Shown here piece after piece: positions 113 through 64,000 of a stretch of 64,000 nucleotides of DNA (position 1 is the first letter of the stretch; each line of letters opens with the position of its first letter). The notes beneath the pieces were generated by a model. That model had not been told where the DNA came from. It searched no databases and was given only the letters and a program-made list of their open reading frames with translations. This DNA comes from Bugula neritina. Lineage: Eukaryota > Animalia > Bryozoa. The translations under genes and the position numbers were made by a program. The stretch is taken from contig OZ037771.1 in the NCBI GenBank assembly GCA_964035545.1, positions 1,809,628 to 1,873,627 on the forward strand. The letters run 5' to 3'.

Positions 113-18353
<18,241 letters not shown>

Positions 18354-30630: not shown

Positions 30631-31904
30631 GGGGAGAGTTTTATAAGAAATCCTACTATATAAGCCCCTATTTACTGCTAAACCCCCATATAATGAGTTT
30701 TTAATTTTGAACAACCAAATCTTTAGGTAAATGAGTGTTTGAAAACTACTGTAGAAGCTAGTCAAGTGACAATTTTATAACAACAGCTATAGTTGAACTG
30801 ATGAGTTATAGTAATAAAATATTGAAATTTGTTGGGTGGTTTTATTACTCTGGTAGTATGCATGTTACAAAATATATTACATTCTATAGCATAGAAAAGT
30901 AAAGCCCTGCCTATAAACATATATTGTGTAAATCATTTTAGCTACTTTCATTCTGCTTGTAAAACATATTTTCCAAAAACAATTCTTAGAATTTCAGGCT
31001 GATAAAAAGTAGTGCATCAAAGGAACAAAGGTCGATGGTAGAAAAAATAAATGCTAGTTTTCTGTGTGTAAGTATGCAAATAACTTTGAAGAGGTTCTTT
31101 ATTCATTTTATGAATATCTGCTGCATATGTAACCAGGAAGAATATGCATTCAATGCTTTTAAACTAAGCAGAAAACTTCAGATGTTAACCTGAACAATTA
31201 ACTACAATGTGATTGGTCCATTATGTAATGCACTACAGCACACTATTGCAACCAGGAAACTTTTCAGCAGGGGTGTACGTATAATATATACAGCCAAGGG
31301 GGTAAAGAGGTATTGGTGCATTCAGGTATAATTATTCCACTTTTGCAACGTACAACATCAATAAACAAATTCGGAACAAGCTAGCTAGTTTTATCAGCTA
31401 TTTTTATTCTCAGTACAACAAAAGCCAAGTGTGATTCCTGCTATTTTTGTTTGTTTGTTTGTTTATTTTGTTATGTTACATCAAAAGCTCAACAAAACAA
31501 TAAAACTATTAGCAATGTTTTAAATAATTTTTGTTAAATTCAGTAGGCTTTTTGCTTTTTTCAAAAATGTCCTGCAAATATTTTTGATTTCTAAATCCTG
31601 ATCCTTCTTTGATTCCTGACAAAAAATTAAATTTAAATCCAAAACAATTTTTGACAAAACAAGATATACATATAAAAATTGTACCGTTGTGAGACGAAAC
31701 ACACTTCAGAGCTGCAATTTGTCACGCATTGGTTAGGAGTGTATAGTTAAATAAAACATTTGTAACATTAGGTACTAAAATTTCTGCATCCACCCCTTAT
31801 CACTATGCATACTTTAAAAGCAATGCACACAGTTGGGTAAAGCAGAGCAGCCAGGAGAGTTTGAACAGAAAGGAATTAAAACATCTGCTAAGAAGCCAAC
31901 CAGA

Positions 31905-34900
31905 ATGACAGAGTGGTGGAGCTCACAGAGAAATCTCATGTCTCAGCCTCATACTAAAGAACACAGAATGCAGAAACCAACCAACATAAAAGTTGACATG
32001 AAGGACCACAGCATGAGACGAGAGGGAAGAGACAACTGTGGAATCTGTGTGCTCTTCACCATCTTTCTCGTCTTTGTCTTCATGTTTGTGATGATCTGCA
32101 TTGGAGTCGTCTACATCCAAAACCTGCAGACAAACATGGTTAACCTGGAGAAGCGAGTCAGAGACTTGGAGAAGCAGTCTTCCAAACAAACAACCTTCAA
32201 GGTAAGTATACAGGTATATTAATTGAGTAATTGCTGTTAATCTAATAAGTATAAGTTATTATAAGACAAATGTTTAAAAAGAAAATATTTGATTTGTGTT
32301 TTTATACCTTTATTCACTAGACTAACAATCGTTAGTTAGGAAACATAGGTATTTTTACATTGTTATAGCCTACTTGCTATTAACCTTAAGAATATCTTTG
32401 TTTTCTAAATAAACACAAGCTAAAGTAGTTTTAGCAATGAGGAAGTAACCCACATGTCTGGGTAGTTATATGAAAGCAACACACTTTGAATGCTATAAGT
32501 TTATGTAGTGTTGAAATAAGTGACTGTCGAACTTGTGATAGTTTTGTTACACAAAAGATATTTCTGTTTATACAGTCTCCTATTATTGAAGACTTTTTCA
32601 ACTTTGCTGCGAAAAACAAATATTTGTTTTAAAAATATAAATGCAACATTACAATATGTGAAAACTTAAAAGTCATAAACTTGTAGAGAGTTTATTATGA
32701 TATGTACGGCATCCTAGTCATTAGGTGACTGGCTGCTGCAGGTTGAAGCTGTGCTCCCAGGGTAGGCCTATTTGTTTGCAGTAGATAGCAGCTAGCATTG
32801 TTGGCATTATCATATTTCTTTTCAGAGTAACCCAATATTTGAACAATGAATTATTGATAACTATTTTGGCAACCTACTCAAAGATTATATAAGCTATTGA
32901 GCATATATTGAGTTACATGAGACAGTCTGGATCAGGTTTAGTGGTTTGCTATGTTTGGCATCTGAAAATTTATAGCACAAGGAAGTAAACATTAAAGTCT
33001 TAATTCATCACAAATGATGGGTCAATACTTACAGATTGAGCTAAGCTGACAGTGTAAAATTTGAGACATGATTGAGTATAAATTAAAAAAAAGCACTCAT
33101 GTTAAGTTCTAAGCTGCTTAATTTTTGTTAGTAAATGAAACTGTCTGCGAGTTTACAGCATCTACAGCTCTGATAAGTTATACAAGGTAGTTGGAAGAGT
33201 GTGCCTATTGCATACAGAGTAATTGATTTGCAAATATTATAGTTGTATAACAGTATAACAATAATTCTCTGGCTTTTGCGACATTTTCGAAAAAGTTTAA
33301 ACTTTAAAGCCTTGACCTCAGCATACTATAAACTTTCTTTTGATCAGAAAATAAATTTTATATTTCCTATAAGTATAGATAAAAAACCTGCAGGATTTAG
33401 TTCCTGGCGTAGTTGTATCACAGGAGCTGTTGACGGCTCATGACTAGTTTCTGTTATTTCAAAATCAGAGTTCAAAATGCAAACGCACCAGGGTCTAGTA
33501 ATTCTTATGTTGCTGCAATTTTTAGTCCTTTAAGTAAACTTCACAAATCAAAAACTGTTCTGTTTAATGTGCTTCAAAATGAATCAATTTTAATTAGAAC
33601 TCAATGGTAAACAAAACATAAGAGAACTTCAAAAGAAGCAGGTTTTTGAGTGAGTTTTTGAGCAAGTGAGCGAGTGAGTGAGTGATAGAGTGGGTTAGTG
33701 AGCTAGTGAGTTAGTGAGTGAGTTAGTGTGAGTGAGTGAGTGAACTACAATAGTTGGCAACCACAGTTAATGATTTACCCAGCAACTGGAGTGCAAGCAG
33801 GAAATTTTAGGTCCTTGGGATTTTAATAGCTGATAAACCTGGGACTTCCCCTTGTTTCTCACAAAAAAAAACCAATATTCTTTTGTTTGCTTGATGAATA
33901 AGTTCAGATTAGCATTGATTTTGCAAACATAGTAGGTCAACATAGGTATAGAATATGTTGCATTATGAAAATGGTCATAACTCTAACAATTCCGGCTAAA
34001 TTAAGCATTTCGAAAACGTGGAAACTTATCTTGAAATTTTCCTGGAAGGGGAGTGTTCATACATTGATAAAGCGTCACAGTTTAATGTACACTTGATAAA
34101 GATTAATACTAGTACTGAGAGCTTTTATTTTTACTGTCCATCTCACTAACAAAAACAAGCGTCAAATAATCTCAACTTATTTCATCCATCTTGGAAGTTA
34201 CAATTTGCATTAATTTAGAATTCGTTTGATTTGGGAGCTTTTAGGTTCTATAGAACCTTTCTGGGTCCTTGTGTCATAATTTTTCTTCAATTTTCAATGG
34301 TAGTGTGCCCACAAATTTGGCTAATTTTTCAGAAAACTGCAGCTATAAAATTAAAAACCACTTGGTGCACACATGGATGGTTTATTTTGGACTAATGTAA
34401 GCCCTCCTGCTAAGATATTGTTATTATGTTTCCTGGCAGAATTGAAAATAATGAGCTATAGTATAACCATAAATAAAAAGCAGTCAACTGTACAACTTTT
34501 AGAAGTTACCCTGGATTTTTTGTCAGCAGCTGCCAGCTAACAGTGTAAACAAAGTTATCAAAAGTAATCAATACAATATAATACATGCATATCCAGCTTG
34601 AATTCAAACAAGGGTTTGTTTTAATAGATATATTACATTCAATTGCAATATTTATTTAACATTTTTAGAGCCAAGACAATAGAGAGGAGAAGGCAACTCT
34701 AAGAATCAAAAGGAACACACATGATCAAGATGACAATGAGGACAACCACACAAGGCTGGAGCACCACGGTTAGTTAATTTGTATTTCCTTTGCTATAAGG
34801 AATAGTGCAAATAATTTCCTAAGAATAGAATTGGTAACATTGCTTTTATCATATATTTAGGCAGATGCTATGCATGGTAGTTAAAAACTGAAAAATTTAG

Positions 34901-37900
34901 AATTAAATAAAGCTTTTATGAGAAGACGTGAAGTAATTCTTTTCTGTGGGGAATCTAGCAAGATGTGAAAAATATTGCATTTCTGAACGCAACACAGTTA
35001 TGCTTGCGAATTTTGATTAATATGGTTTGTAATCATATGTATAGCTGAATGTTTCATTGGGTGCTACAGATGTTTGTCTAGCTACATGCAAAAATTTCAA
35101 CAGACAGTGTCATTGGTCAATGGCTAATTTCTAAACAGTGACCGTGCAACATGTGTGTAAAGGTAAAATGTATCAACCAAAGTTATGGGATCATCACAAA
35201 GTGAAACTTCATGTTTTATCAGGTATACCCACCCACCATGTTGCCTACATCTATGGAGATCCTAAGAGAGTCGGGGTGCCCGCTTCAAATGAAGGTAATA
35301 AGATATTATATTATTATACTATAGGTGTTGTGTTATGATTTAATTCAGAGTATTATATTGCAGTATACCCAGCATGCTGTGTTATCATAATGCAGATATT
35401 TGTCGATATTTTGTGTGGCACCGCAGTAGAGCTGAACTAATAGCAAACAAAAAAAATGAATGTCTCTCTATTGGAAAACCAGTTAAACAAAACTTATTAA
35501 AACTAACTATTGGGAATACAACTCCTAATAATTTACACACATACCTTGTTGGTAAACCTACATGATGATAAAGGCATCAAGCCTATATAGCTTGCCAAAA
35601 ATATATATGACACCCATACCTTACTTTTACACATGAATATGCATTAATATAGTATATATTAGGAGATGCTATGAAACAAGAGTTTGTTGCAGTCACATGA
35701 TTTAAAATACATTTTCACTCAGCTGGACTCTGGTTTCACAAACATTAAACATTAAATATTAAATCGGTAGATTTGGGATTGTAAGTTCTGATGGCAATTC
35801 AATACAATGAAATTGATGGAGAAGACAATAAATTAAAATCAAAAGCTCTGAGAGATGAATGAAAGCTTAGCAAATTAACTGAAATTGTGAAATAAAAATT
35901 GAGTAAATAAAGCTGCAGTACTAACCAGATTATTATTCTATACACACCACCTTCCTACCATTTCGGCAGATTCATCTCATCAGTTTACAAGAGACCTGTC
36001 TGACGAAGCTCAATCGGAATGTGGAAAAAATTATTTTAAAAGAGATGACAACCAAGCATGGTGTCCTGCCACCAGAAGAAAGCGATATGGGCGTTACCAG
36101 ACTAGTAGTGAGTAGTATTATCATTAATGTCTTCATTTATTGATAATTTTAGGTTTGTTTTCTCCTGACGCTCTGTTTAAACCAACTGGTAAAAAAGAAA
36201 ATGGATGTGATGGCACCTTAATGGTTAATAAGAAACCTGGTGCATTTTTTTGTGCAAAGAAAGTTCACGGACAAGCAGACAAAATGTTGTTAACTCGTAA
36301 GCCAGCTTTGAATGTGTTCAAATCATAATTTCTGCGTGAAACTGATTGAACTACCACAATTTTTCAAAAAAAAAGAATTACATGTTTATATTTTGTTATG
36401 TTATACTATTTTATAGCTTTTCTTTATAATTTTTTGTTGCACTTTGCAAATGACTCATTTTAAAGTTAAAAAAATTGCACTTATTGCCTTTCATTCATAA
36501 AGTTAGCATCACACAACATCTTGTTTTATTATTTCGAGATGAGCAAAATCTTCATGGTAAAACAAGGTATTAATCAATTTTTTTGGTTTTTCATTTAGTA
36601 GCTAGATAATATTTTATTACCAAATGTATTAGATTTACAAATACTGTCAATGAAATTCAACGATATTCACATTATTTAGAAAGTTCAAGGTTTTTGTGCA
36701 AAAGCACCAATACCATATAAATATCTAATGATTATAAAATGTATTTAAAATTGTTACCTTTAATACAAAACAGATAATTTTTAAATTAATTTCTTGGGAT
36801 CTCAATTGTTTTAAAAAAGTTAATCCAAATGAAAAAAAGAAATAGATAGTAAGTATCTGTTAAATGATCATCTGTTTAAACTTGCTTATCGTTAGTTCCG
36901 ATTTACGGCTGTTTATACATTTGCAGGTAACAACCACTTTTACAACTACTTTGCAAAAGCTGGGTGGATGAGCAACCACCATCGCTCCCGTGAAAACTAC
37001 GAGCTGCACAGTGATGGGAAAGTTTCAGTCAAGAAAGCTGGACTGTACATTGTACACGCCAGTGTAAGTATATACACTTATTACAAACCTTCAGCCCTAC
37101 TCACATTTTAAATTAGTAGCTGTTTGATTTTTATTGAATGTTATTCTTTTTTAACTTAGTTTTATTTCTTACTCTAAACAAAATGAAAAGCTAAAAGTTT
37201 CTGGAAAGTTTTATTGAACAGGTATTTATCATTTGCTACTTGTGTTAAAAGTTGCCCTAGAAAATGCAAATATGCAAGTGAAATATTGTTTGAAACTAAT
37301 TCTTATTAAATACAGAAAATGTAGCAGAATTAACACCATTGGCAGTTCAGTTAGTATTATTCACAGTATAAATATATTAATTTGTAATTTTTACTATTTC
37401 TTGTAGTTTTTACATTTTAAAGTATAGTATCTTTTGCTTAGCATTGATACTAATTACTGTATGCTATAAACTCAAATGTGTTGTAGACTTGTAAAAGGAT
37501 GCCACTAGTAAAAAATTGTGCTTCTTGAAAACTATTATTATAGTTTTGACAAAAATGTTTTATTAAAAGTCTATTAAAGTACATCAATTAACATAGTTTA
37601 TGCTGAGCATACTATAAAAATTTGTCTATACTTTCATAGTCGATAACTAAATTTTAAATTTTCTTTTTAGATGCACTTCAGTGACTTAAAAAGAGGGGAT
37701 TTGCCACACTACGGAGTATACAAGACTAACCAGCAAGGGGGAAACAAAACTTTAATTAGCAAATGTGTTGTGACAATGTTTGAAGACCCAGAAGACGATA
37801 TACTAGGAGTGTACCCATGTCAAGCGTGGCAGGTGAGGCATACATTGCAAATCTTAATTTCAATGACATTTGCTTATGCAAAATGAGTGGAAAAAACAGT

Positions 37901-38242
37901 CATTACCTTATTACGTAATAGAGCCTGCTTTTTATTGCTAAATATAAAAAATGAAGTACAAGATTAATTTTTAACATTATTATACAGAAAGTTTGATTAT
38001 TAAAACATTGCGAATTCTTAAGCAGTTATTAAATATTCTCAATTGGTATTAATATATTTCAAGCAATTAAATACTTTCCAAGCTAATGAATACTTATTAT
38101 TATTTTGTGAATCTTGTAGCTGGTGCCTCTAGAAAAAGGAGATTTAGTCTACCTACGAATTTCTGGTTATACTTGGTTTAGAGTTGAAAAAGAAACTTTC
38201 CACCTTGCCCTGATACGCCTTAACAAAGAAGAAGTAGAGTAA
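31905..38242 (+). CDS. TNF-superfamily ligand, copy 1 (Eiger/EDA-like type II membrane protein, about 342-354 aa)
   Basis: Exons: 31905-32201 (cytoplasmic tail, TM ICVLFTIFLVFVFMFVMICIGVVYI, coiled coil), 34669-34768 (furin site RIKR), 35223-35294 (HHVAYIYG, strand A-like), 35970-36107 (RRKR), optional 36153-36188, 36927-37063 (GWM...YELHSDGKVSVKKAGLYIVHAS, the TNF-homology B'-B-C signature), 37671-37832 (two Cys), 38120-38242 (LVPLEKGDLVYL...ETFHLALIRL, strands F/G/H). All GT-AG, frame continuous, stop TAA. Confidence 0.88.
33645..33741. repeat. (GTGA)n-type microsatellite in TNF intron 1 (paralog 50773-50860)
   Basis: GAGT/GTTA tetramer arrays. Confidence 0.8.
33841..33850 (+). promoter_or_regulatory. 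NF-kB-like site GGGACTTCCC in intron 1 of TNF copy 1
   Basis: Fits GGGRNYYYCC; identical at the paralogous position in copy 2 (50956-50965). Confidence 0.55.
34039..34047. promoter_or_regulatory. STAT/GAS-like site TTCCTGGAA in intron 1 of TNF copy 1
   Basis: Fits TTCNNNGAA, about 190 bp from the kB site; identical in copy 2 (51147-51155). Confidence 0.5.
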
Positions 38243-38257
38243 AAATGTAGTAGAACA

Positions 38258-38440: not shown

Positions 38441-40882
38441 TTAAAAGTTAGAAAAGCATATCTAAGCAGCTTTTAAGTTGGTATCTCTTGTAGCTTTGCA
38501 AAAATAGAAAATAAAGCACAATAAGTTCAAGCTGCTTTTATAAGTTTGAATGTTCAAGTTGCATATCTAACCTTTTTGAGTGTACATTTTAGTAAAGTGA
38601 GACAATTGTTTCATCTTTGCTACTGTATGTACAATTTATTTTGTTTTATATTTTTGCTGTAAAATAATATTGTTTCATATATTTATATATTTGTATATAA
38701 CCATGCATACAGCTTTCTCTATAATTTGATAGTATTTGATATTTTCTTGGAAATCCCGGTACATAAAATTACATATTTTATATAATATACTATCTCACTA
38801 TATTTTTAGTCATATATACATATATTATTGATTTACTTAAATATAAGCTTGTGTCATTTACAGAATAATTTCAACAACGAAATTATGTTACTGTGAGCCG
38901 TTTTTTCTGAAAATGCAAATATTCTGAAATTCTCTATAAAAATAAATGTATTAAATTGTTTTTGAATTTTCTTGCTAATGAAAACACTTTTACAGAAATA
39001 TTTAATGACTATTCTGATTAAATTAGTTTCATGCATTTAGCAAAGTGCTTTTTGTATTTAAACAAAGATATTGTAGTTGTATTATTTTACAAATGCAGTG
39101 TTGATTGATCTATAATTAAGGTGGGTTACCTACTACTAATTGGAAGTGACAAATTATCAAAACTTTCTAATTTAAGTGTTTTAGATTTTAATAATTTGAT
39201 GCATTACAATACTTTGCTTAGAAAAGAAAGTTGTAATTTTGCAATAATAAATCAATATCAGTTCAAGTTTGAAGGATAATTAAAAAAAGCATAGGTGTGT
39301 TTTTAACTAAGTTATTGATATTTCTATAACCAATATTTAATGTCTTTACAGCTCTTTATTAAACTTGCTTCTAATAAAATAGTACACTTGCTCTATATAA
39401 AAAGATTACAGAAAATTTGCTTTAACATTCACGTCAAGTTATATATTTGATAATATTGTGCATATTTAAAAATAGTCCTTACAAAAACAGAGATATTAAA
39501 ACAAATTCTAAGAATTATGACCAGATAAGAAAATCAATCAAATGGAAAAATTTGCTTATAATTTTATATTCGGCTGCAACAATTTTCCATCTGAGGTTTC
39601 TTTCAAAGATACCATTGTTTGATTTAATAGTAGGTTTGAACAGCTACTTTTACAACTGTCTTGAACCAATTTATTAGAAAGTAAAATAACATAGGAAGTA
39701 ACAGGCTAACCTTTTGGTTATAATAACTGATTTGGTACAATACTTCCCATAGTGGGATGGTTGGCAGAGATTAGAAGTTAGGGGCCTGTGGTTAGCATAC
39801 CAGTGGAGGCCAAAATAAAGAGAAACAACATTGAGTAATATAAAAATGTACACCAGGCTGTAAAACAACATTATTCAGATACCAATATATTATGTCACCA
39901 TTTATGAGCATCTAAGGAATATTTAGTTTAAAGCTATATATTTGTTTGTTAAAAAAGCAAAATACATATTTTCAAAATATTCTTCTTCAGACACAGCTAT
40001 AATATAAAATAATTCAACTTAAAGGCTGAGGAAAATTGTACTAATACCATAGACTCAATAATAGCTGTAAGCTTGCAGTGTAATTAAATGATTGTAAGCT
40101 GTAAATTACCTGAATGTAAAGATGAAACTATTGTGTAGATAGCTAAGGGATTAGGTAAGAGTTCTTGGAACAGCTAAAACTTGTAAACTGGGCTGTCATT
40201 TTCAGACCAGAATTGGTGCCAGCAAGTTGGTAATTCTTATATATTAGCTCAGCTCACTTAACTGCTACAGTTTCAAGAAACTCATTGTGATAAACTTACT
40301 TATAACTACTAGTCCAGTCACTGAATTTCTGTTTTGTCAAGGTTGGTAAAGTTTACCTTAACTTGTTTAATATATCTTAAAAAAATAAAACTACACAGAG
40401 TTGATATAAGTACATTTTATATTGAGAGCAATTTGAAAATAACGTAGGGGGGAGTTTTTTAAATAAGTTTTCTAACTGTATATAATAAACATAAAATTTG
40501 TTGCTTTTGTTATTAATTAAATATGTAAATAATTAGTACTGATTCGTAAGCAATATTAAATTAAAAAAAACTAATGTCAACGTGGTGAAATATTAGAATA
40601 ATGAAAAATTAACTTGTTCGTGTAAAGCTGGAATTTTGTTTGTGTATGGAAGCCATGTTTGAATCAGTTACAGACTGTAAAATCTACTTTCATTATAAAC
40701 ACCTTTATTTCAGTAATTTTTCAGATAGTTTTTCTGAAGTATATATTATTCTGCTTGAGTTTTGACGTCAATTAACTTTAAATTCTGTTTTAAGAATAAG
40801 CAAGCATAGTATACACATCTGATGGATAAAGGTATCGTATTTAATTTATTGTACTCTATTTTTACAGATATATATTGAAATC

Positions 40883-41284
40883 ATGAGAACTCCACCTAGA
40901 CAGAGAGCAGACAACTCTTGTCCCTGTATCAAGCAGAAAATAAAAGATAAAAGACAAACAATATTGGATATTGGCTCAGAGAGAATACATAAACTAAATG
41001 CTAAAGACAGAAATCTCCATAAAAGGCTGGTAGTACTCAAAGCCCTAAAACTAGTGAACCGTCTGCCAGCAAAAACCTTCCAAAAGCAACTGTTGGCTGT
41101 TTGCCCGGAGGTGGGGGTGTGCTTTCACACTGGCAAGAACCCCCCTCTACCAGAAATCAGAGAAGCACCAGCTATTGAGACTAATACTACCGCAGCTGAA
41201 GAGTCAGTTTTAGATATATTTGTTGATGACGACACAGTAGCTTCTGTCCTTGAAGACTTTGATGAGTTCTCAGAAAGTTATTAG
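40883..41284 (+). CDS. SERTA/IER-like Cys/His-framed protein, subtype A copy 1 (133 aa)
   Basis: Single coding exon with a TTTACAG acceptor just upstream of the ATG. RQTILDIGSERIHKLNAKDRNLHKRLVVLKALKLV resembles the SERTA/IER helical hairpin; acidic C-terminus; three near-identical open copies in the window. Confidence 0.75.
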   Translation: MRTPPRQRADNSCPCIKQKIKDKRQTILDIGSERIHKLNAKDRNLHKRLVVLKALKLVNRLPAKTFQKQLLAVCPEVGVCFHTGKNPPLPEIREAPAIETNTTAAEESVLDIFVDDDTVASVLEDFDEFSESY

Positions 41285-42093
41285 TGATAGTTGACTATCT
41301 TAATCAGATAAAGGAGTTGTGCTCTTCTGTACATATAATATGATACAATAGATTTATACTTAATTATTGTCTCCTCCTGTTCCAACTACAGATGAGCTCT
41401 TATTTATGCTGCTTTTATGTATGACTACATACACTGTGTTTCTTTTACTAATAAATGAATATAAATATTCATAAATGTTTAATAAACACTTTATACTTGA
41501 TGGGCAGGTGCTTAACTAAAAGAAGCTAATGCTAGTATATATGCAAAACAATTTCACTTATATAACTAATCACTATTTTTTCATATATATAGATGAAGAA
41601 ACTGTATGTTCAGAGTATTTTTTGCAAGGTTGAAGTGCCAGCTTACCATCTTATAGTATTTCAAATAAATAATAACTTTAAAATAACTCTTTTATGTTAA
41701 TATATTCAGTTATACTAATTACTATTATAGGCTTTAAACCTGTTCATTAGCATTCTAAATCCTTATTCTACTAGAAATGGGAAATTATAGCCTGACTGCT
41801 AATGATAAGAAAGAAAAAGTGACTAAATTTTACAAATGAATTTATTCTCAAAGTGAACAGAGCCATCTGTTAAATACAATTTATATTTTCTAGCATATAA
41901 AAGACTGCACCTCTACATACATATACCAGTTACATATTATATGAATAGAATCTCCTCAAAACACAAGACTAGGACAGCACGCATAAAAACATTTAGAAAG
42001 AAATGGAAATGGAATTTGTAGATTAAAGTTTAGTTAGAGGCTAATGTTGTGAAGAGTTGAATCTTTCTGCATATGTTAGCTCAGACTAGTGGC

Positions 42094-42636
42094 TCACTGA
42101 TTAATTAAATAGTCTAACATAGACATTATGGCTTCATCACTTTCAGGATCATCATGTAAAGGTGTGTGAGTTGTCTCCCCAGTACTGGGTGTAGAATCAC
42201 CAACATTACTCGCATTCCCTGCAGTATTTGGTTGGTTATTAGCATGTCCATTGAGGTCATGACCTTCAAGATGGTCACTGTGCACAACCTGACTTCCACT
42301 TTGACCCTCTTGTCTTTCTAGCTCTTCATTTTGGCCATCTTGTACTCTACTTCCTTCACCATTGTTTGAAGAATTTGAAGGAAGGACATGGGAACACAAT
42401 CCTTCTTCTGGACACATTTTCAAAAACTGCTTTCTAAAGCGAGATTTGGACAAAAAGTGAATCCTGCAGAGGGTGTTACGAAGAGCCAATTGCTTTTGCA
42501 AGTTTTTATCTTTTGCTTTGAGCTCTTCAAGATTCTCCACTCCTAGTTCAAACCATTGTTTTCGTCTTTTCTCTACCTTCCTCTTGATGCAAAAACAAGA
42601 GCGATTGCCTCTGTTTCTTCTAATGGTGACTCTCAT
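42094..42636 (-). CDS. SERTA/IER-like protein, subtype B copy 1 (180 aa)
   Basis: RKQWFELGVENLEELKAKDKNLQKQLALRNTLCRI carries a SERTA-like L..NTL.RI motif; CFC...CPEEGLCSH; disordered linker and acidic terminal helix DEAIMSMLDYLINQ. Confidence 0.78.
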   Translation of the reverse strand: MRVTIRRNRGNRSCFCIKRKVEKRRKQWFELGVENLEELKAKDKNLQKQLALRNTLCRIHFLSKSRFRKQFLKMCPEEGLCSHVLPSNSSNNGEGSRVQDGQNEELERQEGQSGSQVVHSDHLEGHDLNGHANNQPNTAGNASNVGDSTPSTGETTHTPLHDDPESDEAIMSMLDYLINQ

Positions 42637-42692
42637 TTTTTACCTATGAAATAATTTATCTTTTAGGTTTGAGGTTTTTTACTGCTTCGATC

Positions 42693-42785
42693 TGTGTGTA
42701 TGTGTGTGTATGTGTGTGTATGTGTGTGTATGTGTGTGTATGTGTGTGTATGTGTGTGTATGTGTGTGTATGTGTGTGTGTGTGT
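42693..42785. repeat. (TGTGTGTGTA)n microsatellite upstream of B1
   Basis: 10-bp unit array. Confidence 0.95.
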
Positions 42786-44258
42786 CATAGTCTAAACAGC
42801 ACCAATTAAATTATAGTGCAATTAATTTATGTATTGTGAGAATGAAATCTAGGCTAGCATGGTCAAATCCAAAGTAGGTACAGAAATGTACTCAGCTGGT
42901 GTGTTTGACTTGTAAAATGAGACTCAACTATAACTTCAAACATGAGAATATTCTCACATCAGAATGAAATAATTTTGTTAAACAATACACTTTGCACTGT
43001 TTTGCCAGTAGTTGTTTGAAAAATCATCTTGTTTTGTATCTGGAAAACTTATAAACAAAGCCAACTTTAAAATCAATGAATTTTAAAATAGAATTAAAAT
43101 TTAAACTACTTTTATAGTCAGTGTTTTAAATCTTTCTTTTCAAAAACTTGTATAGTTTGTAGTACTCTTACCTTGTTAGAAGAACTCCCTGTATTCAATC
43201 AGTTACACTGTTTTATATTCAAATTGAGTTCTTTTTACCAACTCTTATTGAGTATTTTCTGTATTTCAGATCTGTTAGAGAGTGGAAACACAACCTGCTT
43301 CTACCAAAACGTAAATAGAAATGGTGATGGTGGCAAAGCTCTGATAATCTTTTGGCTTTATTAGTAGTTGCAGCTTTCTATTGTGTTTATTCAAATAGGC
43401 ATTCATAAAATAGCTTTTTCTCCTGTAATTAAAATAATATGCAGAGTTGTAATGAACATATTATAGAATTGTAATATAATTTTATCTATTGTAAGCATAT
43501 TTTTTTTCAACTTTATTGTCCTGATTGATATTAAATTACTGTGAGAAGACATATTGCAACTATCCATGCTACCATCTAATCTTTAACATTACAAATTATT
43601 TTTTAGATCCATTTTAAAAAAAATATCTCCCACCATTTTTCTAATTCAATTATTACAGTAAAAGAGTACTTCAACCATAAAAACTATAAGTAACTTTTAT
43701 AAGAAAAATAGTGTTTGGTAAATAAATATTGCTTGACGGTATTTAAACTAAAATCCAAATGATCTAAACAATTGTTTAACAAACATTTATGAATATCTTC
43801 AATGAAATAATAAGCTATTTAGAATGAGAAATTTTTGTTAAATGTAGCCATAGGAAAACAATTATGTAAATTAATTAATAGCCAATTAAGAGCTATATCA
43901 GCTATAGTGTGCCCATATCAGCTATAGTGTGCCCTCAATTAATTGTCTGTTTATGCAACAGAAATGTTTCCAGAATAGAGAATGAAACTCTCAACACAAT
44001 AATTTTTGATGTGAGTACATTTTAAATTAACAGTTGTTTAAATAGAATTGAGGTATATTTTCTTGGAAAAATATTTTCAACACATAAACATAAACATAAA
44101 AGTTGTTGCAAAGGGACAAACTTTGTTACTAAATATATGTAAATTAATAGTACTGCATAATGACATAAGAAATGTGAAAAAAATTATATAATGTCAAAAT
44201 AGTGAGAAAATTCAATAATTAAAAAGTTTCAGTCAAGCCTCAGAACTTTGAAAGCCAT

Positions 44259-44400
44259 GTTTCAATTAGTAGACTTTAGAAAGAATAGGTTGGAAACAGA
44301 GGTGTAGAGTTTTGGTTGCCTTTAGTTTATAAACTAAAAGCAACCAAAACTCTACACCTCTGTGTCCAACCTATTCTTTCTAAAGTCTACTGATTCCAAC
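44259..44400. repeat. 142-bp spacerless near-perfect palindrome
   Basis: Arms are symmetric about GTTTA|TAAAC (centre 44329/44330) with only a few mismatches. Confidence 0.92.
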
Positions 44401-44754
44401 GGAAAATAAATAAAATATAATTAAGCATCAAACTGGAATGTTAAAAATAATATTTGAGTTTAATGCTTAATTATTTTTATTTATCAAACAAACAACTTCA
44501 CAAAATATAAACATTATCAGAAGTTTAAAAATTGCCACCACATTGGTGAAAAGTAGGTTTTTCTTCAAATATTTTATTAAATTAAACATAATTTCAGCCT
44601 GATTTTTGGGACACTCTCTCAAGATAGATTAATCTGCTCGAGTTTGACCTAAATTAATTCTGAAGTCAAAATGAAAGCATGCATAGTATACATATCTTGT
44701 GGACAGATGACTCATGTTTAATTTGCTTTACTCTAGTTTTACAAAGTTGAAATC

Positions 44755-45038
44755 ATGATAATTCGACACCAGGACAAAGAGCAGATGACTCTTGTTTTTG
44801 TATGAAAGAGAAAATAAAAGATAAAGAAACAATATTGAATATTGGCTCAGAGGGAATACACGAACTTATAAAAACCAAAGACAGAAATCTTCATAAAAGT
44901 CTGGCTGTACATAAGGAATTTAGAAAACAATTTTCAGGAGCAACTGTTGTCTGCTTGCCTAGAGGTGGAGTGTGTTTACACACTGAAAGGAATTCAGGAA
45001 TACCCCCCTACCAAACAGCAGAAGAAACTCATGCATAA
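44755..45038 (+). pseudogene. Subtype D pseudogene copy 1 (degenerate A-like)
   Basis: The ATG at 44755 (same GAAATCATG context as the A genes) is out of frame with TPGQRADDSCFC..KIKDK. The second helix is partly deleted and the acidic tail is missing. Confidence 0.75.
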
Positions 45039-45129
45039 CTTTTTATAGATGAAGAAACTGTATCTTCAGTACCTACTGAAAAAGTTTGTTGAAAAGTTAA
45101 AGTGCCGGTTTGTCATCCTAAACAAATAG

Positions 45130-45202
45130 CCTTCAAATGAGATTGAACCCATGACTATGGATTTACCAAGCCAATGCTCTAACCTCTAGACCACAGCTGC
45201 TC
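45130..45202 (-). mobile_element. tRNA-derived SINE head or tRNA-like fragment
   Basis: The minus strand has A-box TGGTCTAGAGG and B-box GGGTTCAATCTC; no clean acceptor stem. Confidence 0.5.
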
Positions 45203-49555: not shown

Positions 49556-52500
49556 ATGACAGAGTGGTGGAGCTCACAGAGAAATCTCATGTCCCAGCTT
49601 CATTCTAAAGAACACAGAATGCAGAAACCAACTAACATAAAAGTGGACATAAAAGACCACAGCGGGAAACGAGAGGAAAGAAACAACTGTGGAATCTGTG
49701 TGCTCTTCACCATCTTTCTCGTCTTTGTCTTCATAGTTGCCATGATCTGCATTGGAGTCGTCTACATCCAAAACCTGCAGACAAACCTGGTTAACTTGGA
49801 AAGGCAGTCTTCCAAACAAACAACCTTCAAGGTAAGTATACTGGTATATTATTGCGCAATTGCTGTTAATCTAATAAGTATAAGTTATTATAAGACAAAT
49901 GTTAAAAAAATATTTGATTTGCTTTTTAATACCTTTATTAACTAGACTAATAACCGTTGGTTAGGAAACATAGGTAGTTTCACATTGTTATACTTGCTGT
50001 TAGCCTTAAGAATATCTTTGTTTTCTAAATAAACACAACCCAAAGTAGTTTTAGCAATGAGGAAGTAGCCCACATGTCTGACTAGTTATATGGAAGTGAC
50101 ACACTTTGAATGCTAAAAGTTTATGTAGTGTTGAAATAAGTGACTGTCGAACTTGTGATAGTTTTGTTACAGGATACATTTTTGTTCATACAGTCTTCTC
50201 CTAAGAGACACTCCTTCAACTCTGCAACTTAAAACTAATACATGCTTTAAATAATATTATATAAATGCAACATTATATGTGAAAACTTAGAAGTCATAAA
50301 CTTGTAGAAAGTTTATTATAATATGTACGGGTATTCTAGTCATTAGGTGACTGACTGCTGCAGGTTGAAGCTGTACATACTCCCAGCGTACTTGTTTGCA
50401 GTAGATAGCAAGCAGTTTGCATTGTTGGCATTATCATATTTCTTTTGAGAGTATTTTGATATTTGAGCGATAAATTGTTGATAATTATTTTGGCAAGCTA
50501 CCCAAAGATTATATAAGCTGTATCTAGTTCCTTGTATGGTATCACAGCCCCATGACTAGTATTAGACTAGTTTCGGTTGTTTCAAATTTAGTTTTCAAAA
50601 CACAAACGCACCAGGGTCTAGTAATTCTGACGTTGCTGCATATTTTAGTTCATTAATTAAACTTCACTGATCAAAAACAACCTCTGTTTAACATACTTTA
50701 AAATAAACCAATTTTAATTAGAACTCAATGATAAACAAAACATACATGTAGGAGAACTCCAAAACAAGCAAGTTTTTGAGTGAATTTTGAGTGAGTTTTT
50801 CAGTGAGTTTTTGAGTGAGTGAGTGTGTTAGTTAGTGAGTGAGTTAGTGTGAGTGAGTGAACAACAATTGTTGGCAACCACAGTTAATGATTTACCTAGC
50901 AACTGGAGCGCAGGGGAATTTTTAGGTCCTTAGGATTTTAATAGCTGATTAACCTGGGACTTCCCCTTGCTTCTCACATAAGACCCACAGGCTTTTGTTT
51001 GATTGATGAATAGCTTCAGATTAGCATTGATTTTGCTAACATAAGTATGTCAACATACATATATATGTTGCACTATGAGAATATTCATAACTCTAACAAC
51101 CCACAAAATTAAGCATTTCACAAACATGGAAACTTATCTTGAAATTTTCCTGGAAGGGGAGTGTTCATACATTGATAAAGTGTCACAGTTTAATGTTCAC
51201 TTGATAAAGATTAATATTATAACTAAGAGCTTTTATCCTTACTGTCCATCTCACTAACAAAATCAAGCGTCAACTAGTCTCGTTACTTTATCTATCTTGG
51301 ATATTTAAATTTATAATGAAGCTAACTGAAGTTTTAATGTGATAATTTAAATTTGTTTGATTTGGAAGCTTCTAGGCTTTATAAAACCTTTCTGAATGCA
51401 TGTGTTATAGATTTTTTCAGTGGTTGTGCGCCCACAAATATATGGCCATTTTTTTCAAAAAACTGCAGCTATGAAATAAAAAACAAATTGGGGCACACAT
51501 GGATGGTTTATTTTTGACTAATGTAAGCCCTCTTGCTAAGATATTTACATTATGTTTCCTGGCAGAATTGAAAGTAATGAGCTATAATATAATTATAAAT
51601 AGAAAACAGTCAACTGTACAACTCTTAGAAATTACCCTGGATTTTTGTCAGCAGTTGCCAGCTCACAGTGTAAACAAAGTTATCAAAAGTTATCAATACA
51701 ATATATATGCATATCCAGCTTTAGATTAAACAAGGGTTTGTTTTAATAGATATATATTAGATTTAATTGCATGATTTAGCGCGGAGACAGTAGAGCGGAG
51801 AAGGCAACTCTAAGAGTCAAAAGGAACACACATGATCAAGATAAAGGAGAGGACGACCACATTCGGCTGGAGCACCACGGTTAGTTAACTTGTATTACTT
51901 TTACTAGGAAATATGTAACATAAATATGTTGTATATTTCCTCAGAATGTTATTTGGTTCGTTCTATTGTTATACTGTGCAACACGTGTGTAAAGGTGAAA
52001 TGTATCAACCAAAGTTATGGGATAATCACAAAGTAAAACTTCATGTTTCAGGTATACCCACCCACCATGTTGCCTACATCTTTGGAGATCCCAAGAAAGT
52101 TGAGGAGCATGTTTTACGTAACGGTAACAGAAAAATATATAACAATATAGCTGTTGTAGTATAATTTAATTCCTTAATATTATATTACAATATAGCTGTC
52201 GTATTATTATAATGGAATAAATTTGTCATTAGTTTACATGGCATCAGCAAAACTCTAATAATAGTAAACAAAAATCTTTTATCAGCTAAATTCGCATCTC
52301 ATTGGAATACTAATTTTGCAAAACCTGGTGACTAAATATTTGGAGTACAACTCCTACTAACTCACACACATACCTTGTTAGGAAAACTACATGATAATAT
52401 ATAGACATCAAACCTATAGTTTTTCAATAATGTATGACACTCATTCCTTAACTTTGCAATTTAGTATGTAATATATTATGATCTCTATTAAGGCATGCTA

Positions 52501-55180
52501 TGTGATCAGCTTTCATTACGTACATCTATATTTAAAAATATACTCACGGTCAGCTATAGACTGTGGTTTCACACACCTTAAATTGAAAATTACAAACATT
52601 GGATTTTTGATTGTAAATTCTGATGACAATTCAATACAATAAAATTATTGAAGAAAAAAATAAGCTGCAATTAAAACCTGTACACGCAACTATTTTGTTC
52701 TTTAAAGCACAATCAAAGGCTTGCATTATATATGAAACTTGAATCAACAATCGATTTAATGAATAAATTGCACTCTTGCTGTGAAAGATTGATAAAGTTA
52801 AAAACTTGCAAACAATAAATCGAGCAATATTTGCACACATTTTTTATGAAATGAAAAATAGAACAGAACTCATTAACTTTTGGAGACAAATTACAGCTGA
52901 AATAAAAGCTTTGAAATAAAAGTTGCATGGATGAAGCTGCAGTGCTAACCAGATTATTATTCTATACACACTACCTTCCTACCATTTTGGCAGATTCATC
53001 TCATTGGTTTTCAAATGACCTGTCTAACTACCATCGATCGGAATATGGAAACAAGTATTTTGAAAGAAATGACAACCAGATATGGTGCCCTGCCACTAGA
53101 AGAAAGCGATATGGGCGTTATCAGACTACTGGTAAGTACATTAGTACTATCACTGATGTTTTCATTGCATGGTTAAACGTTTTAGGTTTAATTTCTTCTG
53201 ACGCTCTGTTTAAACCAACTGGTAAAAAAGAAAATGGATGTGATGGCACCTTAATGGTTAATAAGAAACCTGGTGCATTTTTTGTGCAAAGAAAGTTCAC
53301 GGACAGGCAGACAAAATGTTGTTAACTTGTAAGCCAGCTTTGAATCATAATTTTCGTGTGACACTGATCAGGCTACCACCTAACGAAGCCCAATTTTTGT
53401 TTCGAATAAAATGAGGCACAAATTTATAATTTAATATTGTAATATTTTATAGCTTTTCTTTATAATGTTTTTGTTAGACTTTGCAAATGATGACTCATTT
53501 TCAAGTGAGAAAATTGCCCTTATTGGCTTCTTTCCATAGTTAAGCATGACATAACAGCTACTTTTAATATTTTTAGGATGAGCAAAAATTTTTCGATAAA
53601 ATAAGGTCTTAAACTAACTTTTTTATTCACTGATAGACAATATTTTTAGTACCAGGTTCGTTGGATTTACAAATACTCTCAATGAACTTCAGCTGCACAT
53701 TATTTGAAAACTTCCTTCAAACTTTTGGGACAAGCATTTTTATCATATCATAGTTAATGATTAGATATAATTATTTATAATTGCTATATACCTTTAATAC
53801 AAAGCAGATACATTTTAAATTTGTTTTTAGAATTTAAATTATTTTAAAAAAAATTTCAACTAAATTAAATAAAAGAACTGACCTCTAATTATCTGTCACA
53901 GGATCACCTTTTTTAAACTTAACTTACTGTTACACCCTTTTGACAATTTTTTTACATATTTGCTATTTGTAGTCAAAAATCCCTTTTACGACTACTTTGC
54001 AAAAGCTGGGTGGATGAAAAACAATCATCGTTCTCATGAAAATTACGAGCTGCACAGTGATGGGAAAATCTCAGTGAAGAAAGCCGGGCTGTACATTGTA
54101 CACGCCAGTGTAAGTTTAATAAAAGCAACGTGGTGGTATTATAACAAAATCAAATGCTACTTCAAATTGTTTAAACATATTTTTCTCACATTTTGAATTA
54201 GTTATAACTGTTTAATTTTTTTGAATGTTTCTCGTTTATCTTCGTTTTATTCCTTAATAAAAATCTATAAAGTGCATCAACTAACAAAACTTATGCTGAA
54301 CATGCAATCAAAATTATCTACTTTCGTAGTAAATAACGAAATTTCAACTTTACTTTTCAGATCCATTTCAGCGACCTAACGAAAAGGGATAACCCATACT
54401 ATGGAGTATACAAGACTGACCGTAATGAGAATAATACAGCTTTAATTAGTAAATGTGTTGCGACAACATTTGAAAACCCAGAAGAAGATATACTAGGAGT
54501 GTACCCATGTCAAGCGTGGCAGGTGAGGCATAAGTTGCACTTGTTTATGCAAATAAAGTAAGAAAATAATAAACAGTTAACTGCTTTCAAATTGCTAAGC
54601 TATAACGCTCATTAAATAGCTGCTTTGTCTGAGTTGCACAAGAATACAAGAAAAAACATGTTGATCTAAGTGAAAATATTTATCAATATTAGATTTTGTT
54701 ATAAACTTTGCAAATATCTGTTGAGATAGGTGAATTAATTTGGATGTGCTAAAACATACAATCTTTTAAAATTTAGTAAAACAGCACTACCCAAACTATT
54801 GTAGATATGTTTAACTACAAATTGTAATATTTAATTTTTTAGAATTTAATTTTGTTTTCTGTTGTTGTACTATATATAAAGACAGCAAACTTCAATCTAA
54901 TTTTTCAACATTACATATTATACAAAGAGCTGAATGACTAACACATATTGGGAATTCTGAGACAGTTTTAAGCATCTCAGCTGACACTAATGTTTATAAA
55001 TAATTGAATACTTTCTAATTTAATAGATATTTAATAATGTTTGTTTTAATCTTGTAGCTGGTGCCTCTAGAGCAAGGAGATTTAGTTTACCTGAAAATTT
55101 CTGGTTACAACTGGTTTAGAGTTGAGAAAGAAACTTTCCACCTTGCCCTGATACGCCTTAACAAAGAAAGACTAGAGTAA
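49556..55180 (+). CDS. TNF-superfamily ligand, copy 2 (paralog of 31905-38242, about 335-347 aa)
   Basis: Exons: 49556-49831, 51780-51879 (RVKR), 52052-52123, 52994-53131 (RRKR), optional 53186-53221, 53973-54109 (GWMKNNHRSHENYELHSDGKISVKKAGLYIVHAS), 54361-54522, 55058-55180. Exon lengths equal copy 1 except exon 1 (7 codons shorter). No stops or frameshifts. Confidence 0.88.
50956..51155. promoter_or_regulatory. Paralogous kB (50956-50965) and GAS (51147-51155) pair in intron 1 of TNF copy 2
   Basis: Same motifs and near-identical spacing as in copy 1. Confidence 0.5.
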
Positions 55181-56598
55181 AGTTGTAGTAGAACTAACCT
55201 AGCAACCAGACTAGCAGCAATCATAGCAACTGACCTAGCAACCAGCCTGACAACAAACTTGGCAACCAGCCTAGCAACAAGCCTAGCAACAAGCAGAGCA
55301 CCCTTTAAAAGTTAGAAAGCATGTCTAAGCATATTTTTTAGTTGGTATTTTTGTAGCTTTACAAAAACAGAAATTTAAAAAACAAGTTATTCAAGCTGCT
55401 TTTATAAGTTTAAATGTTTAAGTTGCATATCTAAGCTTTTTGAGTGTACATTTTAGTAAAGTAAGACAGTCGTTTAATTTTTGCTAATGCATGTAAAATT
55501 TCTTTTTTTTATATTTTTGCTGTAAAATAATTTTGTTTCATAGACTTATATGTTCGTATATAAGCATGCATACAACTTTCTCTATAATTTGATAGTATTT
55601 GATATTTTATTGGAAATCCCGGTACATAAAACTACATATTTTATATAATATACTATCTCACTATATTTTTAATCATATATAAATGATTTACTAGTAAATG
55701 ATATAGTAAATATATTTTATTTGACTGACTTTCACAACGCCTGTACAAATATAACAATCATGCAAATACACAGATGAAAATTTAATGAACGAATAACAAG
55801 TTAATAAAACTATAGCAATGTAATGTAAATCTAGCAGTTTCATATAAATATAATGTTTGAATTTTAAAACATAGAATCCCCTATCAAAGAAGAATTATAA
55901 TTATAAAATTTAGCCAAAGTTCTAATTACAGTGGCAATTTGACAAAAATAAACTATTTCTAATAAATACTGATTTTATAAACATGTTAGAGTTAATAATG
56001 GGCAGGTGTTTACCTAAGAGAAGCTAATGCTAGTATATATGCAAAACAATTCCATTTATATAACTGATTATTCTTTTTTCATTTTCATAGATGAAGAAAC
56101 TGTATCTTCAGTACTGAAAGGTCTTGCTGAGTTTTTGCAAGGTTGAAGTGCCAGTTTACCATCTTATAGTGTTTCAAATAAATAATAACTTGCACTCTCT
56201 TTTATGTTAATATATTCCGTTATACTAATTACTATTATAGGCTTTAAACCTGTTCATTAGCATTCTAAATCCTTATTCTACTAGAAATGGGAAATTATAG
56301 CTTGACTGCTAATGATAAAAAAAGAGTGACTAAATTTTACAGATAAGTTTATTCTCAAAGTGAACAGAGCCATCTGTTAAATACAATTTATATTTTCCAG
56401 CATAAAAAAGACTGCAACTCTACATACATATACCAGTTACATAATATATGAATAAAAGCTTCTCAAAACACCAGAAAAGGGCAAAACACAGGAAAACATT
56501 TAGGAAGAAATGGAAAGGGAATTTGTAGATTAGAGTTTATTTACAAGCTAATGTTGTGAAGAGTTAAATATCTCTGCATGTCAGTTCAGGTTGATGGC

Positions 56599-57141
56599 TC
56601 AAAGGTTATGGAAATAGTCTAATATAGAAGTTATGACTTCATCACTTTCAGCTTCATCATCTACAGGTGTGTGAGTTGTCTCCCCAACACTGGGTGTGGT
56701 ATTACCAGCATTACTTGCATTCTCTTCTGTATTTGGTTGGTTATTAACATGTCCATTGAGGTCATGACCTTCAAGATGGTCACTGTGCACAACTCGGCTT
56801 CTACTTTGACTTTTTAGTCTTTCTAGCTGTTCGGTTCGGCCATTTTGTACTCTACTTCCTTCACCATTGTTTGAAGAATTTGAAGGAAGGACATGGGAAC
56901 ACAGTCCTTCTTCTGGACACATTTTTAAAAACTGCTTTCTAAATCGAGACTTGGGCAAGAAGTAAATTCTGCAGAGAGTGTTACGAAGAATCAATTGCTT
57001 TTGCAAGTTTTTATCCTTTGCTTTGAGCTCTTCAAAATTTTCCACTCCTAGTTCAAACCATTGCTTTCGTCTTTTCTCTATCTTCCTCTTGATGCAAAAA
57101 CAAGAGCGGTTGCCTCTGTTTCTTCTAATGGTGACTCTCAT
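56599..57141 (-). CDS. SERTA/IER-like protein, subtype B copy 2 (180 aa)
   Basis: Open paralog of 42094-42636; core LILRNTLCRI, with a more diverged tail. Confidence 0.78.
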   Translation of the reverse strand: MRVTIRRNRGNRSCFCIKRKIEKRRKQWFELGVENFEELKAKDKNLQKQLILRNTLCRIYFLPKSRFRKQFLKMCPEEGLCSHVLPSNSSNNGEGSRVQNGRTEQLERLKSQSRSRVVHSDHLEGHDLNGHVNNQPNTEENASNAGNTTPSVGETTHTPVDDEAESDEVITSILDYFHNL

Positions 57142-57195
57142 TTTTTACCTATAAATGAAGACATAATATAAGTTTAAGGTTTTTTACTGCTTTGA

Positions 57196-57323
<128 letters not shown>

Positions 57324-59319: not shown

Positions 59320-59600
59320 ATGATAATTCGACACCAGGACAAAGAGCAGACGACTCTTGTTTTTGTATAAAAGAGAAAATAAAAGATAAAGAAACAATAT
59401 TGAATATTGGGTCAGAGGAAATACACAAACTAAAAACCAAAGAAAGAAGTCTTCATAAAAGTCTGGCTGTACATAAGGAATTCAGCAAACAATTTTCAGG
59501 AGCAACTGTTGTCTGCTTGCCTAGAGGTGGAGTGTGTTTACACACTGAAAGGAAATCAGGAATACCCCCCTACAAAACAGCAGAAAAAACTCATGCATAA
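59320..59600 (+). pseudogene. Subtype D pseudogene copy 2
   Basis: Carries the same frameshifted start and helix deletion as 44755-45038. Confidence 0.75.
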
Positions 59601-59689: not shown

Positions 59690-59765
59690 AGCCTTCAAAT
59701 GAGATTGAACGGGATGACTGTGGATTTACCAAGCCAGTGCTCTAACCTCTAGACCACAGCTGCTC
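59690..59765 (-). mobile_element. Duplicate of the tRNA-like fragment at 45130-45202
   Basis: Carried along in the segmental duplication. Confidence 0.5.
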
Positions 59766-60327: not shown

Positions 60328-60945
60328 CTAGAGTGTCTGAAGATATTGTTCCAGGAAGTCTGTAGCTCTCTTACATTCATCTTCATCATTGAAAGCTTGA
60401 GGGAACTCATTAGAGCTAATGGAACTAGACAAGAGAACATTGTGATTAAAATTATCACTGTTGTTACTTTCTTCCATCTCTTGCATGATATTATAGAGAT
60501 CTCCTTCTTGGTCATTATCAGTGCAACTCTGTTCACCAGAGTAATCACTGGGGTTCTGTTTTTCAAGATAAATACTAAAGCTCTCCAATTCAAGGCTAAT
60601 CTCACTGTTATACTCCATTTGACCTTCCCCTTGATCTTCATTGACTTCACTTTCATCATCACTACTCTGTGCTTCAAAAGATGTGAGCACATGGGTGCAA
60701 AACCCTTCTTCTGGGTGCATCTCTAAATATTGCTTTCGGAAATTGGACTTAGACAGCAGCTTTATATTGTTTCTTGTTCTACGAATTGCCAACTGTTTTC
60801 CTAGGTTTCTTTTCTTTTTCTTCAGCACTTTCAGATTCTCTTTTCCAAGTTTCAGAAGTTGGTTTCTTTTCTCTGCCATTTTGTAGTCAATGCACGCACA
60901 TGCACTGCTACCATCTGCCCAGCTTCTTCTAATAACAACCCTCAT
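60328..60945 (-). CDS. SERTA/IER-like protein, subtype C copy 2 (205 aa)
   Basis: Open paralog of 45758-46378, differing in length by one in-frame codon. Confidence 0.78.
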   Translation of the reverse strand: MRVVIRRSWADGSSACACIDYKMAEKRNQLLKLGKENLKVLKKKKRNLGKQLAIRRTRNNIKLLSKSNFRKQYLEMHPEEGFCTHVLTSFEAQSSDDESEVNEDQGEGQMEYNSEISLELESFSIYLEKQNPSDYSGEQSCTDNDQEGDLYNIMQEMEESNNSDNFNHNVLLSSSISSNEFPQAFNDEDECKRATDFLEQYLQTL

Positions 60946-62784: not shown

Positions 62785-63604
62785 TAGTTGACTATCTTAA
62801 TCAGATAAAGGAAATGTGCTCTCCTGCACATATAATATGATACAATAGATTTATACTTAATTATTATCTCCTCCTGTTCCAACTACAGATGAGCTCTTAT
62901 TTATGCTGCTTTTATGTATGACTACATACACTGTGTTTCTTTTACTAATAAATGAATATAAATATTCATATATGTTTTATAAACACTTTATACTTGATGG
63001 GCAGGTGCTTAACTAAAAGAAGCTAATGCTAGTATATATGCAAAACAATTTCACTTATATAACTAATCACTATTTTTTCATATATATAGATGAAGAAACT
63101 GTATCTTCAGTACTGAAAGGTCTTGCAGAGTTTTTTGCAAGGTTGAAGTGCCAGTTTACCATCTTATAGTGTTTCAAATAAATAATAACTTGCACTCTCT
63201 TTTATGTTAATATATTCAGTTATACTAATTACTATTATAGGCTTTAAACCTGTTCATTAGCATTCTAAATGTCTTATTCTACCAGAAATGGGAAATTATA
63301 GCCTGACTGCTAATGATGAGAAAGAAATAGGGACTAAATTTTACAAATGAATTTATTCTCAAAGTGAACAGAGCCATCTGTTAAATACAATTTATATTTC
63401 CCAGCATATAAAAGACTGCAACTCTACATACATATACCAGTTACATAATATATGAATATAATCTTCTCAAAACACAGGAAAAGGACAGAATACATAAAAA
63501 CATTTAGAAAGAAATGGAGAGGGAAGTTGTAGATCAAAGTTTATTTACAGGCGAATGTTGTGAAGAGTTAAATCTTTCTGCATATGTTAGTTCAAGCTGG
63601 TGGC

Positions 63605-64000
63605 TCACTGATTAATTACATAGTCTAACATAGACAGTATGGCTTCATCACTTTCAGGATCATCATGTAAAGGTGTGTGAGTTGTGTCCCCAGCACTGGG
63701 TGTAGAATCACCAGCATTACTTGCATTCCCTGCAGTATTTGGTTGGTTATTAGCATGTCCATTAAGGTCATGACCCTCAAGATAGTTACTGTGCACAGCT
63801 TGACTTCCACTTTGACCCTCTTGTCTTTCTAGCTCTTCATTTTGGCCATCTTGTACTCTACTTCCTTCACCATTGTTTGAAGAATTTGAAGGAAGGACAT
63901 GGGAACACAATCCTTCTTCTGGACACATTTTCAAAAACTGCTTTCTAAAGCGAGATTTGGACAAGAAGTGAATTCTGCAGAGAGTGTTACGAAGAATCAA
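63605..64000 (-). CDS. SERTA/IER-like protein, subtype B copy 3 (5' end beyond the window)
   Basis: Open frame nearly identical to the C-terminal 130 aa of B1. Confidence 0.75.
   Translation of the reverse strand: MILRNTLCRIHFLSKSRFRKQFLKMCPEEGLCSHVLPSNSSNNGEGSRVQDGQNEELERQEGQSGSQAVHSNYLEGHDLNGHANNQPNTAGNASNAGDSTPSAGDTTHTPLHDDPESDEAILSMLDYVINQ

Follow-up and report, generated by a model that had tools for sequence, protein, structure and literature searches.

The 64,000-nt stretch analysed here (the window; contig OZ037771.1, hereafter C7, positions 1809628-1873627) comes from the 216-Mb genome of Bugula neritina, a bryozoan studied for its bryostatin symbiosis. It carries two TNF/Eiger-type ligand genes, T1 and T2, and ten loci of a family of small genes (eight intact, two frameshifted; from 40883 to beyond 64000) that very probably derive from the bryozoan SERTA gene. 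An older tandem cluster of TNF/Eiger genes, six here and four on contig C3, contains this diverged, Bugula-restricted SERTA offshoot, and blocks of 3-12 kb have been copied or lost in tandem; these usually held only small genes, but a d-a-TNF-b unit was copied on at least one occasion (letters denote small-gene types). On balance, the locus is best read as a birth-and-death tandem array in which TNF and small genes were copied as neighbours, a reading we hold with moderate confidence.

The array runs past the window end (coordinates above 64000 continue the window numbering into adjoining C7 DNA), with 17 small genes and six TNF genes on C7 in the order T1, a b c d a, T2, b c d a b d a b d a, T3, b e, T4, T5, T6. 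The minus strand carries types b, d and e and the plus strand types a and c, which creates head-to-head pairs. Three further loci on contig C5, with no TNF exon found in 40 kb there, bring the family to 20. The original prediction described ten related small genes in the window; the ten loci stand, but c1 and c2 are frameshifted, with a stop after 16 codons, and b3, intact in the genome, is cut by the window end. The other frameshifted copy in the array is d4. The loci in the window are:

40883..41284 (+), a1, divergent SERTA-derived gene, type a, 133 aa
42094..42636 (-), b1, type b, 180 aa
44755..45038 (+), c1, a-like pseudogene, stopping in the frame from the homologous ATG
45758..46378 (-), d1, type d, 206 aa, head-to-head with a2
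47819..48220 (+), a2, type a, 133 aa
56599..57141 (-), b2, type b, 180 aa, of the TNF-adjacent b sublineage
59320..59600 (+), c2, frameshifted pseudogene
60328..60945 (-), d2, type d, 205 aa
62380..62784 (+), a3, type a, 134 aa
63605..64000 (-), b3, type b, 180 aa, start 147 nt past the window end

All homologues recovered for the small genes belong to Bugula neritina records or to JGI and Logan contigs matching those. In every intact small gene checked, a pyrimidine tract and an AG stand 6-18 nt ahead of the ATG, as they do in the canonical SERTA gene; because this splice acceptor lies just ahead of the ATG, a non-coding first exon and duplication at the DNA level are suggested. Ratios of nonsynonymous to synonymous substitution (dN/dS) of 0.12-0.41 in the core and 0.25-0.80 in the tail indicate that the small genes are under purifying selection.

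None of the ten small proteins matches the Pfam SERTA (PF06031) or IER (PF05760) family at E<=1, and a genome scan with the Pfam SERTA model finds only the gene on contig C2. The protein of this single-copy gene (C2:1880379) is 99% identical to the cluster holding EB796_004629. In hhalign, the array profile aligns with canonical bryozoan SERTA at P 91%, E 9.5e-7 and a score of 38.9, compared with 11.7±2.8 for 500 column shuffles (maximum 22.6), a maximum of 22.4 for 7-column block shuffles and 11.3 for the reversed control. The alignment, about 10 standard deviations over the shuffles, is gap-free over 66-72 columns and reaches into a bryozoan-specific third helix. Against single genes the array profile scores 33.8 with the C2 SERTA gene, 17.9 with a SERTA-like gene on contig C1 and 10.9, the shuffle level, with the IER gene on contig C8. 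A six-frame search with the array profile recovers the Watersipora SERTA gene (E 4.9e-7), and an Atlas feature search places SERTA clusters on top for a1 (0.89) and the d1 core (0.90), leads on the tool's own scale. AlphaFold predicts a helix-loop-helix and a third helix, and models the tail as disordered apart from a helix at its end (predicted local distance difference test 86-94 for the core, 87 for the helix-loop-helix model); the input alignments contained canonical SERTA rows, which makes the models partly dependent on SERTA. A PDB sequence search with the SERTA alignment gave nothing useful. The hhalign score, the Watersipora and Atlas matches, the helix-loop-helix model and the splice acceptor together argue for a very probable SERTA origin. 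The family had been described as SERTA/IER-like, and the first half of that name holds (38.9 against a shuffle maximum of 22.6), whereas the IER half does not, given the score with the genome's own IER gene.

The relatives used in these comparisons show features of their own. The C1 gene (L039:4093-4323, +; 76 aa) carries Cys in place of the conserved Ser, and its match to canonical SERTA reaches E 4e-12. The C8 gene (L040:1243-2334, -) is a canonical-looking IER-family gene with a 363-aa frame, over the Pfam cut-off. In Bugula as in Watersipora, the canonical SERTA gene is nested within an intron of a host gene on the opposite strand (with ankyrin hits in Watersipora).

Both TNF-type genes of the original prediction are present in the window. 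Their introns are of the GT-AG kind, and with exon 4a their frames stay open for 342 aa (T1) and 335 aa (T2). Their intactness needs one qualification, since the main frames are open but the alternative exon 4b of T2 is frameshifted.

31905..38242 (+), T1, TNF/Eiger-type type II membrane ligand gene, 7 exons, 342 aa (4a) or 344 aa (4b); exons 31905-32201, 34669-34768, 35223-35294, 4a 35970-36107 or 4b 36153-36296, 36927-37063, 37671-37832, 38120-38242
49556..55180 (+), T2, TNF-type gene, 335 aa (4a); exons 49556-49831, 51780-51879, 52052-52123, 4a 52994-53131, 53973-54109, 54361-54522, 55058-55180; 4b at 53186-53328 (143 nt)

An 8-exon model with a 36-nt fifth exon was dropped for the 7-exon model. 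A third close copy, T3, lies at 77157-82752, past the window end, and exon matches reveal three older paralogues (T4-T6) around 89-108 kb, with four more genes on contig C3. As read from the sequence, T1 and T2 each have one hydrophobic stretch of ~25 residues in exon 1, a coiled stalk and an RxKR site, consistent with a type II topology with a stalk; the furin-type site of T1, in exon 2, is RIKR. Single TNF exons are too short to match Pfam, and a PDB sequence search with one of them gave nothing useful. The presence of the TNF homology domain in T1 and T2 is instead established indirectly, by way of the Watersipora protein P0036, because the last three exons of T1 are collinear with it (57, 56 and 60% identity) and P0036 passes the Pfam TNF (PF00229) cut-off at E 4.7e-7, with moth Eiger 6I50 as its best match.

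Exons 4a and 4b are Cys-containing phase-1 stalk exons 45-54 nt apart (window 35970-36296 and 52994-53328). They are likely to be mutually exclusive, since the annotated Watersipora isoforms X1 and X2 each use one of a matching pair (L041:19717-20055). In T1, exon 4b keeps an open frame. It lacks one base in T2, in T3 and in two copies from a second Bugula assembly, where a third copy has lost the exon to a deletion. The dN/dS of the TNF domain ranges from 0.05 (T2/T3) to 0.40 (T1/T2), which indicates purifying selection on the TNF family; stalk values, based on few sites, approach or exceed 1. Directly after the TNF stop codon, both copies carry a 12/36-nt tandem repeat (38257-38440, 55192-55300). 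The C3 genes form a second cluster at 18.62-18.79 Mb, in which a stop interrupts a TNF-domain exon of one copy; no SERTA-like gene was found in the 70 kb examined there.

The duplication history can be read from DNA that still aligns between copies, as had been claimed for the intergenic regions: T1 and T2 share 72-82% identity, and the b-c-d-a block and its copy align at 90%. The segments concerned are:

41478..48401, b-c-d-a block, tandem copy at 55973-62965, 7.8% mismatch
45520..57198, d-a-TNF-b unit, copy at 73073-84808, 5.0-8.6% mismatch across parts
48377..48759, R, a/b intergenic segment of ~380 nt, left direct copy flanking T2
55687..55994, R', right direct copy of R, with an internal deletion

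The claim that TNF and small genes were co-amplified holds for the 12-kb d-a-TNF-b unit of T2 and T3, the sole demonstrated co-duplication of the two kinds, of which T3 lies outside the window. It does not hold for the T1/T2 duplication within it: the homology (31090-38821 against 48759-55684, about 14% mismatch) covers the TNF gene only, without a small gene, so co-amplification cannot be read from the window by itself. After a3, TNF-free b-d-a units repeat, and most small-gene duplications proceeded without TNF. R was considered as a target duplication of ~380 nt left by TNF transposition; this was rejected, R being ordinary a/b intergenic DNA. It is single between small genes in the second Bugula assembly and mostly deleted at a1/b1, a3/b3 and a4/b4, and the copies flanking T2 and T3 are explained without transposition because tandem duplication yields flanking copies.

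The second assembly (GCA_010799875.2) probably represents a different lineage of the B. neritina complex, as judged by a synonymous divergence (dS) of 0.147 in the canonical SERTA gene and about 7% mismatch in its flanks. At least three TNF copies are interspersed there with genes of types a, b, c and d on a single contig, in a different order, with an inversion, a d/b chimera and different junctions; a TNF-R-b junction is found on a second contig. With a dS of 0.067 against 0.147 between the lineages, the T2/T3 duplication is younger than, or close to, their split. Synteny is found in part: the linkage extends to the second Bugula lineage, but the Watersipora TNF gene has no SERTA-like frame in the 10 kb searched on either side.

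The birth-and-death reading is favoured by the block structure and its mismatch values, the TNF-free b-d-a units, the C5 copies without TNF, the reordered second assembly and the frameshifted c1, c2 and d4. Some copies are 95-97% identical, as an assembly or haplotig artefact would produce, and the original prediction had named this among the things that would overturn it. Such an artefact is largely refuted: copies differ by 3-20% and in structure, and the independent assembly is interleaved alike. In addition, contigs specific for T1 in DNA run X1 (DNA-like, without splice joints, and possibly the source sample) show 0 differences at a depth of 125-139, paralogue-specific contigs have similar depth, and the TNF-to-b joint exists there as DNA. 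Other results do weigh against parts of the favoured account. A single-sequence hidden Markov model of canonical SERTA did not separate the array proteins from 4623 shuffled decoys, and fold searches (Foldseek, Atlas shape search, VIA-align) gave generic helical matches only and did not return IER5. The hidden Markov model result, with the lack of a Pfam match, an identity of 16-23% to canonical bryozoan SERTA and the very long branch between the two groups in the tree, would suit small proteins that are not SERTA-derived and whose basic helical hairpin converged on a SERTA-like form. Convergence is nevertheless improbable in view of the long gap-free alignment, the agreement of Atlas for two types and a gene structure the same as that of canonical SERTA.

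The remaining adverse points concern linkage. Genes b2 and b5 group with bN2, a TNF-adjacent gene of the other assembly (support 87/96), so that the TNF-b junction is older than the split of the Bugula lineages; TNF is interleaved in both of these, and selection for linkage could produce the same pattern. They would fit a co-regulated immune module, in which a kappa-B enhancer in the TNF intron also drives the adjacent SERTA-derived genes and the unit was amplified for joint dosage, a tentative alternative that we regard as unlikely but worth weighing. The motifs in question are:

33841..33850 (+), kappa-B consensus site GGGACTTCCC, T1 intron 1
50956..50965 (+), kappa-B site, T2 intron 1
40763..40770, palindrome of the cyclic AMP response element (CRE), 120 nt upstream of the a1 ATG

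Intron 1 of the Watersipora TNF gene has the same GGGACTTCCC as intron 1 of T1, T2, T3 and two copies in the second assembly, and background searches found 0 strict kappa-B sites in 107 kb of Bugula and 0 in 49 kb of Watersipora DNA. The Bugula copies represent one ancestral site, which leaves Watersipora and the differing T6 sites as independent points. This conservation, the co-duplicated d-a-TNF-b unit, the age of the TNF-b adjacency and the CRE ahead of a1 and a5, its only carriers, count in favour of a shared module, and the T2 site lies about 3-4 kb from the d1/a2 upstream region. However, the 1.5 kb ahead of each of the eight small genes scanned, whose promoters are unmapped, contains no kappa-B site; most small-gene copies lie in TNF-free units or on C5; junctions differ between the lineages; and the linkage is absent within 10 kb in Watersipora. 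Heat-shock element, AP-1 and CArG sites showed no enrichment in the motif scan. A more elaborate version, in which the intronic NF-kB enhancer co-induces TNF and a zinc-clasped SERTA subfamily that either exchanged B55 binding for a different partner or serves as a decoy, with selection behind the amplification of the unit, appears less likely again. Joint amplification is best explained by proximity, and a functional pairing of TNF with the small genes is a minority reading.

In the birth-and-death account, unequal crossing-over would drive the turnover of the array, and TNF and small genes would travel together because they are neighbours. The TNF genes may encode cytokines that are induced by NF-kB and shed by furin, with a choice of two alternative stalk exons. 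The small proteins would most likely be nuclear adaptors or co-regulators, considering their basic helical hairpin, an acidic tail ending in an amphipathic helix and a candidate Zn site. Net charges are +6 to +17 in the cores and -8 to -40 in the tails, as would suit a nuclear adaptor whose acidic tail is of the activation type. The candidate site is a CxC...CxH motif (C13, C15, C80 and H82 in a1 numbering), invariant except for one C5 copy without the first Cys; of the four residues, canonical SERTA has an equivalent for the second Cys alone. A zinc site is plausible.

The hairpin had been expected to engage PP2A-B55, and the residues of the canonical interface do not bear this out. In IER5, the mutations S14A, K17E and L30E abolish B55 binding (bioRxiv 10.1101/2023.08.29.555174), and matching contacts are made by K17 of IER2 and K44, L56, R58 and V60 of CDCA4 (PMC11446282). 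The Ser14 equivalent is Gly in 23/23 array proteins; at the Lys17 equivalent, types b, d and e have Asn and type a has Arg. Helix 2 is kept in 22/23, with L/M/I at position i, Lys at i+2 and L/V/I at i+4. Because the Ser position is Gly and the Lys position Asn, canonical B55 binding is doubtful for types b, d and e, which have probably lost or weakened it; type a may keep it in part.

Among known systems the SERTA proteins (SERTAD/TRIP-Br, CDCA4, Taranis; nearest, the C2 bryozoan gene) resemble the array in the single coding exon behind a splice acceptor, the gap-free helix-loop-helix register, the hydrophobic i and i+4 and basic i+2 positions of helix 2 and the acidic low-complexity tail. 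The array differs in falling under Pfam detection, in the substitutions at the Ser and Lys positions and in the added CxC...CxH motif. SERTA genes usually occur in low numbers and change little: the parent gene in bryozoans is a single locus with a dN/dS near 0.04 and a core almost invariant across 20 sequences, compared with 20 loci and core values of 0.12-0.41 in the array. IER genes are intronless, whereas the array genes appear to have an intron in the 5' untranslated region, and the C8 IER gene is not matched. IER2 and IER5 share the helical hairpin, and helix 2 of type a reads LHKRL against L30-H31-K32-x-L34 in IER5 (bioRxiv 10.1101/2023.08.29.555174).

Tandem expansion of Eiger-like TNF superfamily genes is already well known in invertebrates, with up to 14 genes in tunicates and 23 in Crassostrea gigas (PMC12843592). 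Those expansions share with Bugula the type II membrane ligands, the C-terminal TNF domain and lineage-specific tandem duplication; they differ from Bugula, where the genes are interleaved with a SERTA-derived family and carry a Cys-containing alternative stalk exon pair (also found in Watersipora). The unusual part is the expanded, interface-altered SERTA offshoot; no description of such an offshoot or of an interleaved TNF/SERTA cluster was found in the literature searched. Twenty loci with altered B55 residues, yet under purifying selection, constitute a natural experiment on other roles of the hairpin. The conserved intronic kappa-B site and the alternative stalk exons also offer a testable view of bryozoan TNF regulation; should co-induction fail, the locus would be an ordinary tandem array with an unusual passenger.

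Three neighbouring features complete the description of the region. An RH1-domain exon at window 18009-18353 (-), with a Pfam E of 6e-14, is transcribed away from T1; we take it to be JIP3/4-like, and the position of a JNK scaffold beside an Eiger-type cluster may be chance. A basic open frame of 161 aa at window 25295-25780 (+), which has no Pfam match, is perhaps transposon-derived. On C5, about 5 kb from the three family copies, lies a Polinton/Maverick-like element (C5:8995001-9005200), in which polymerase-, ATPase-, integrase-, capsid- and protease-like frames were recognized by inspection.

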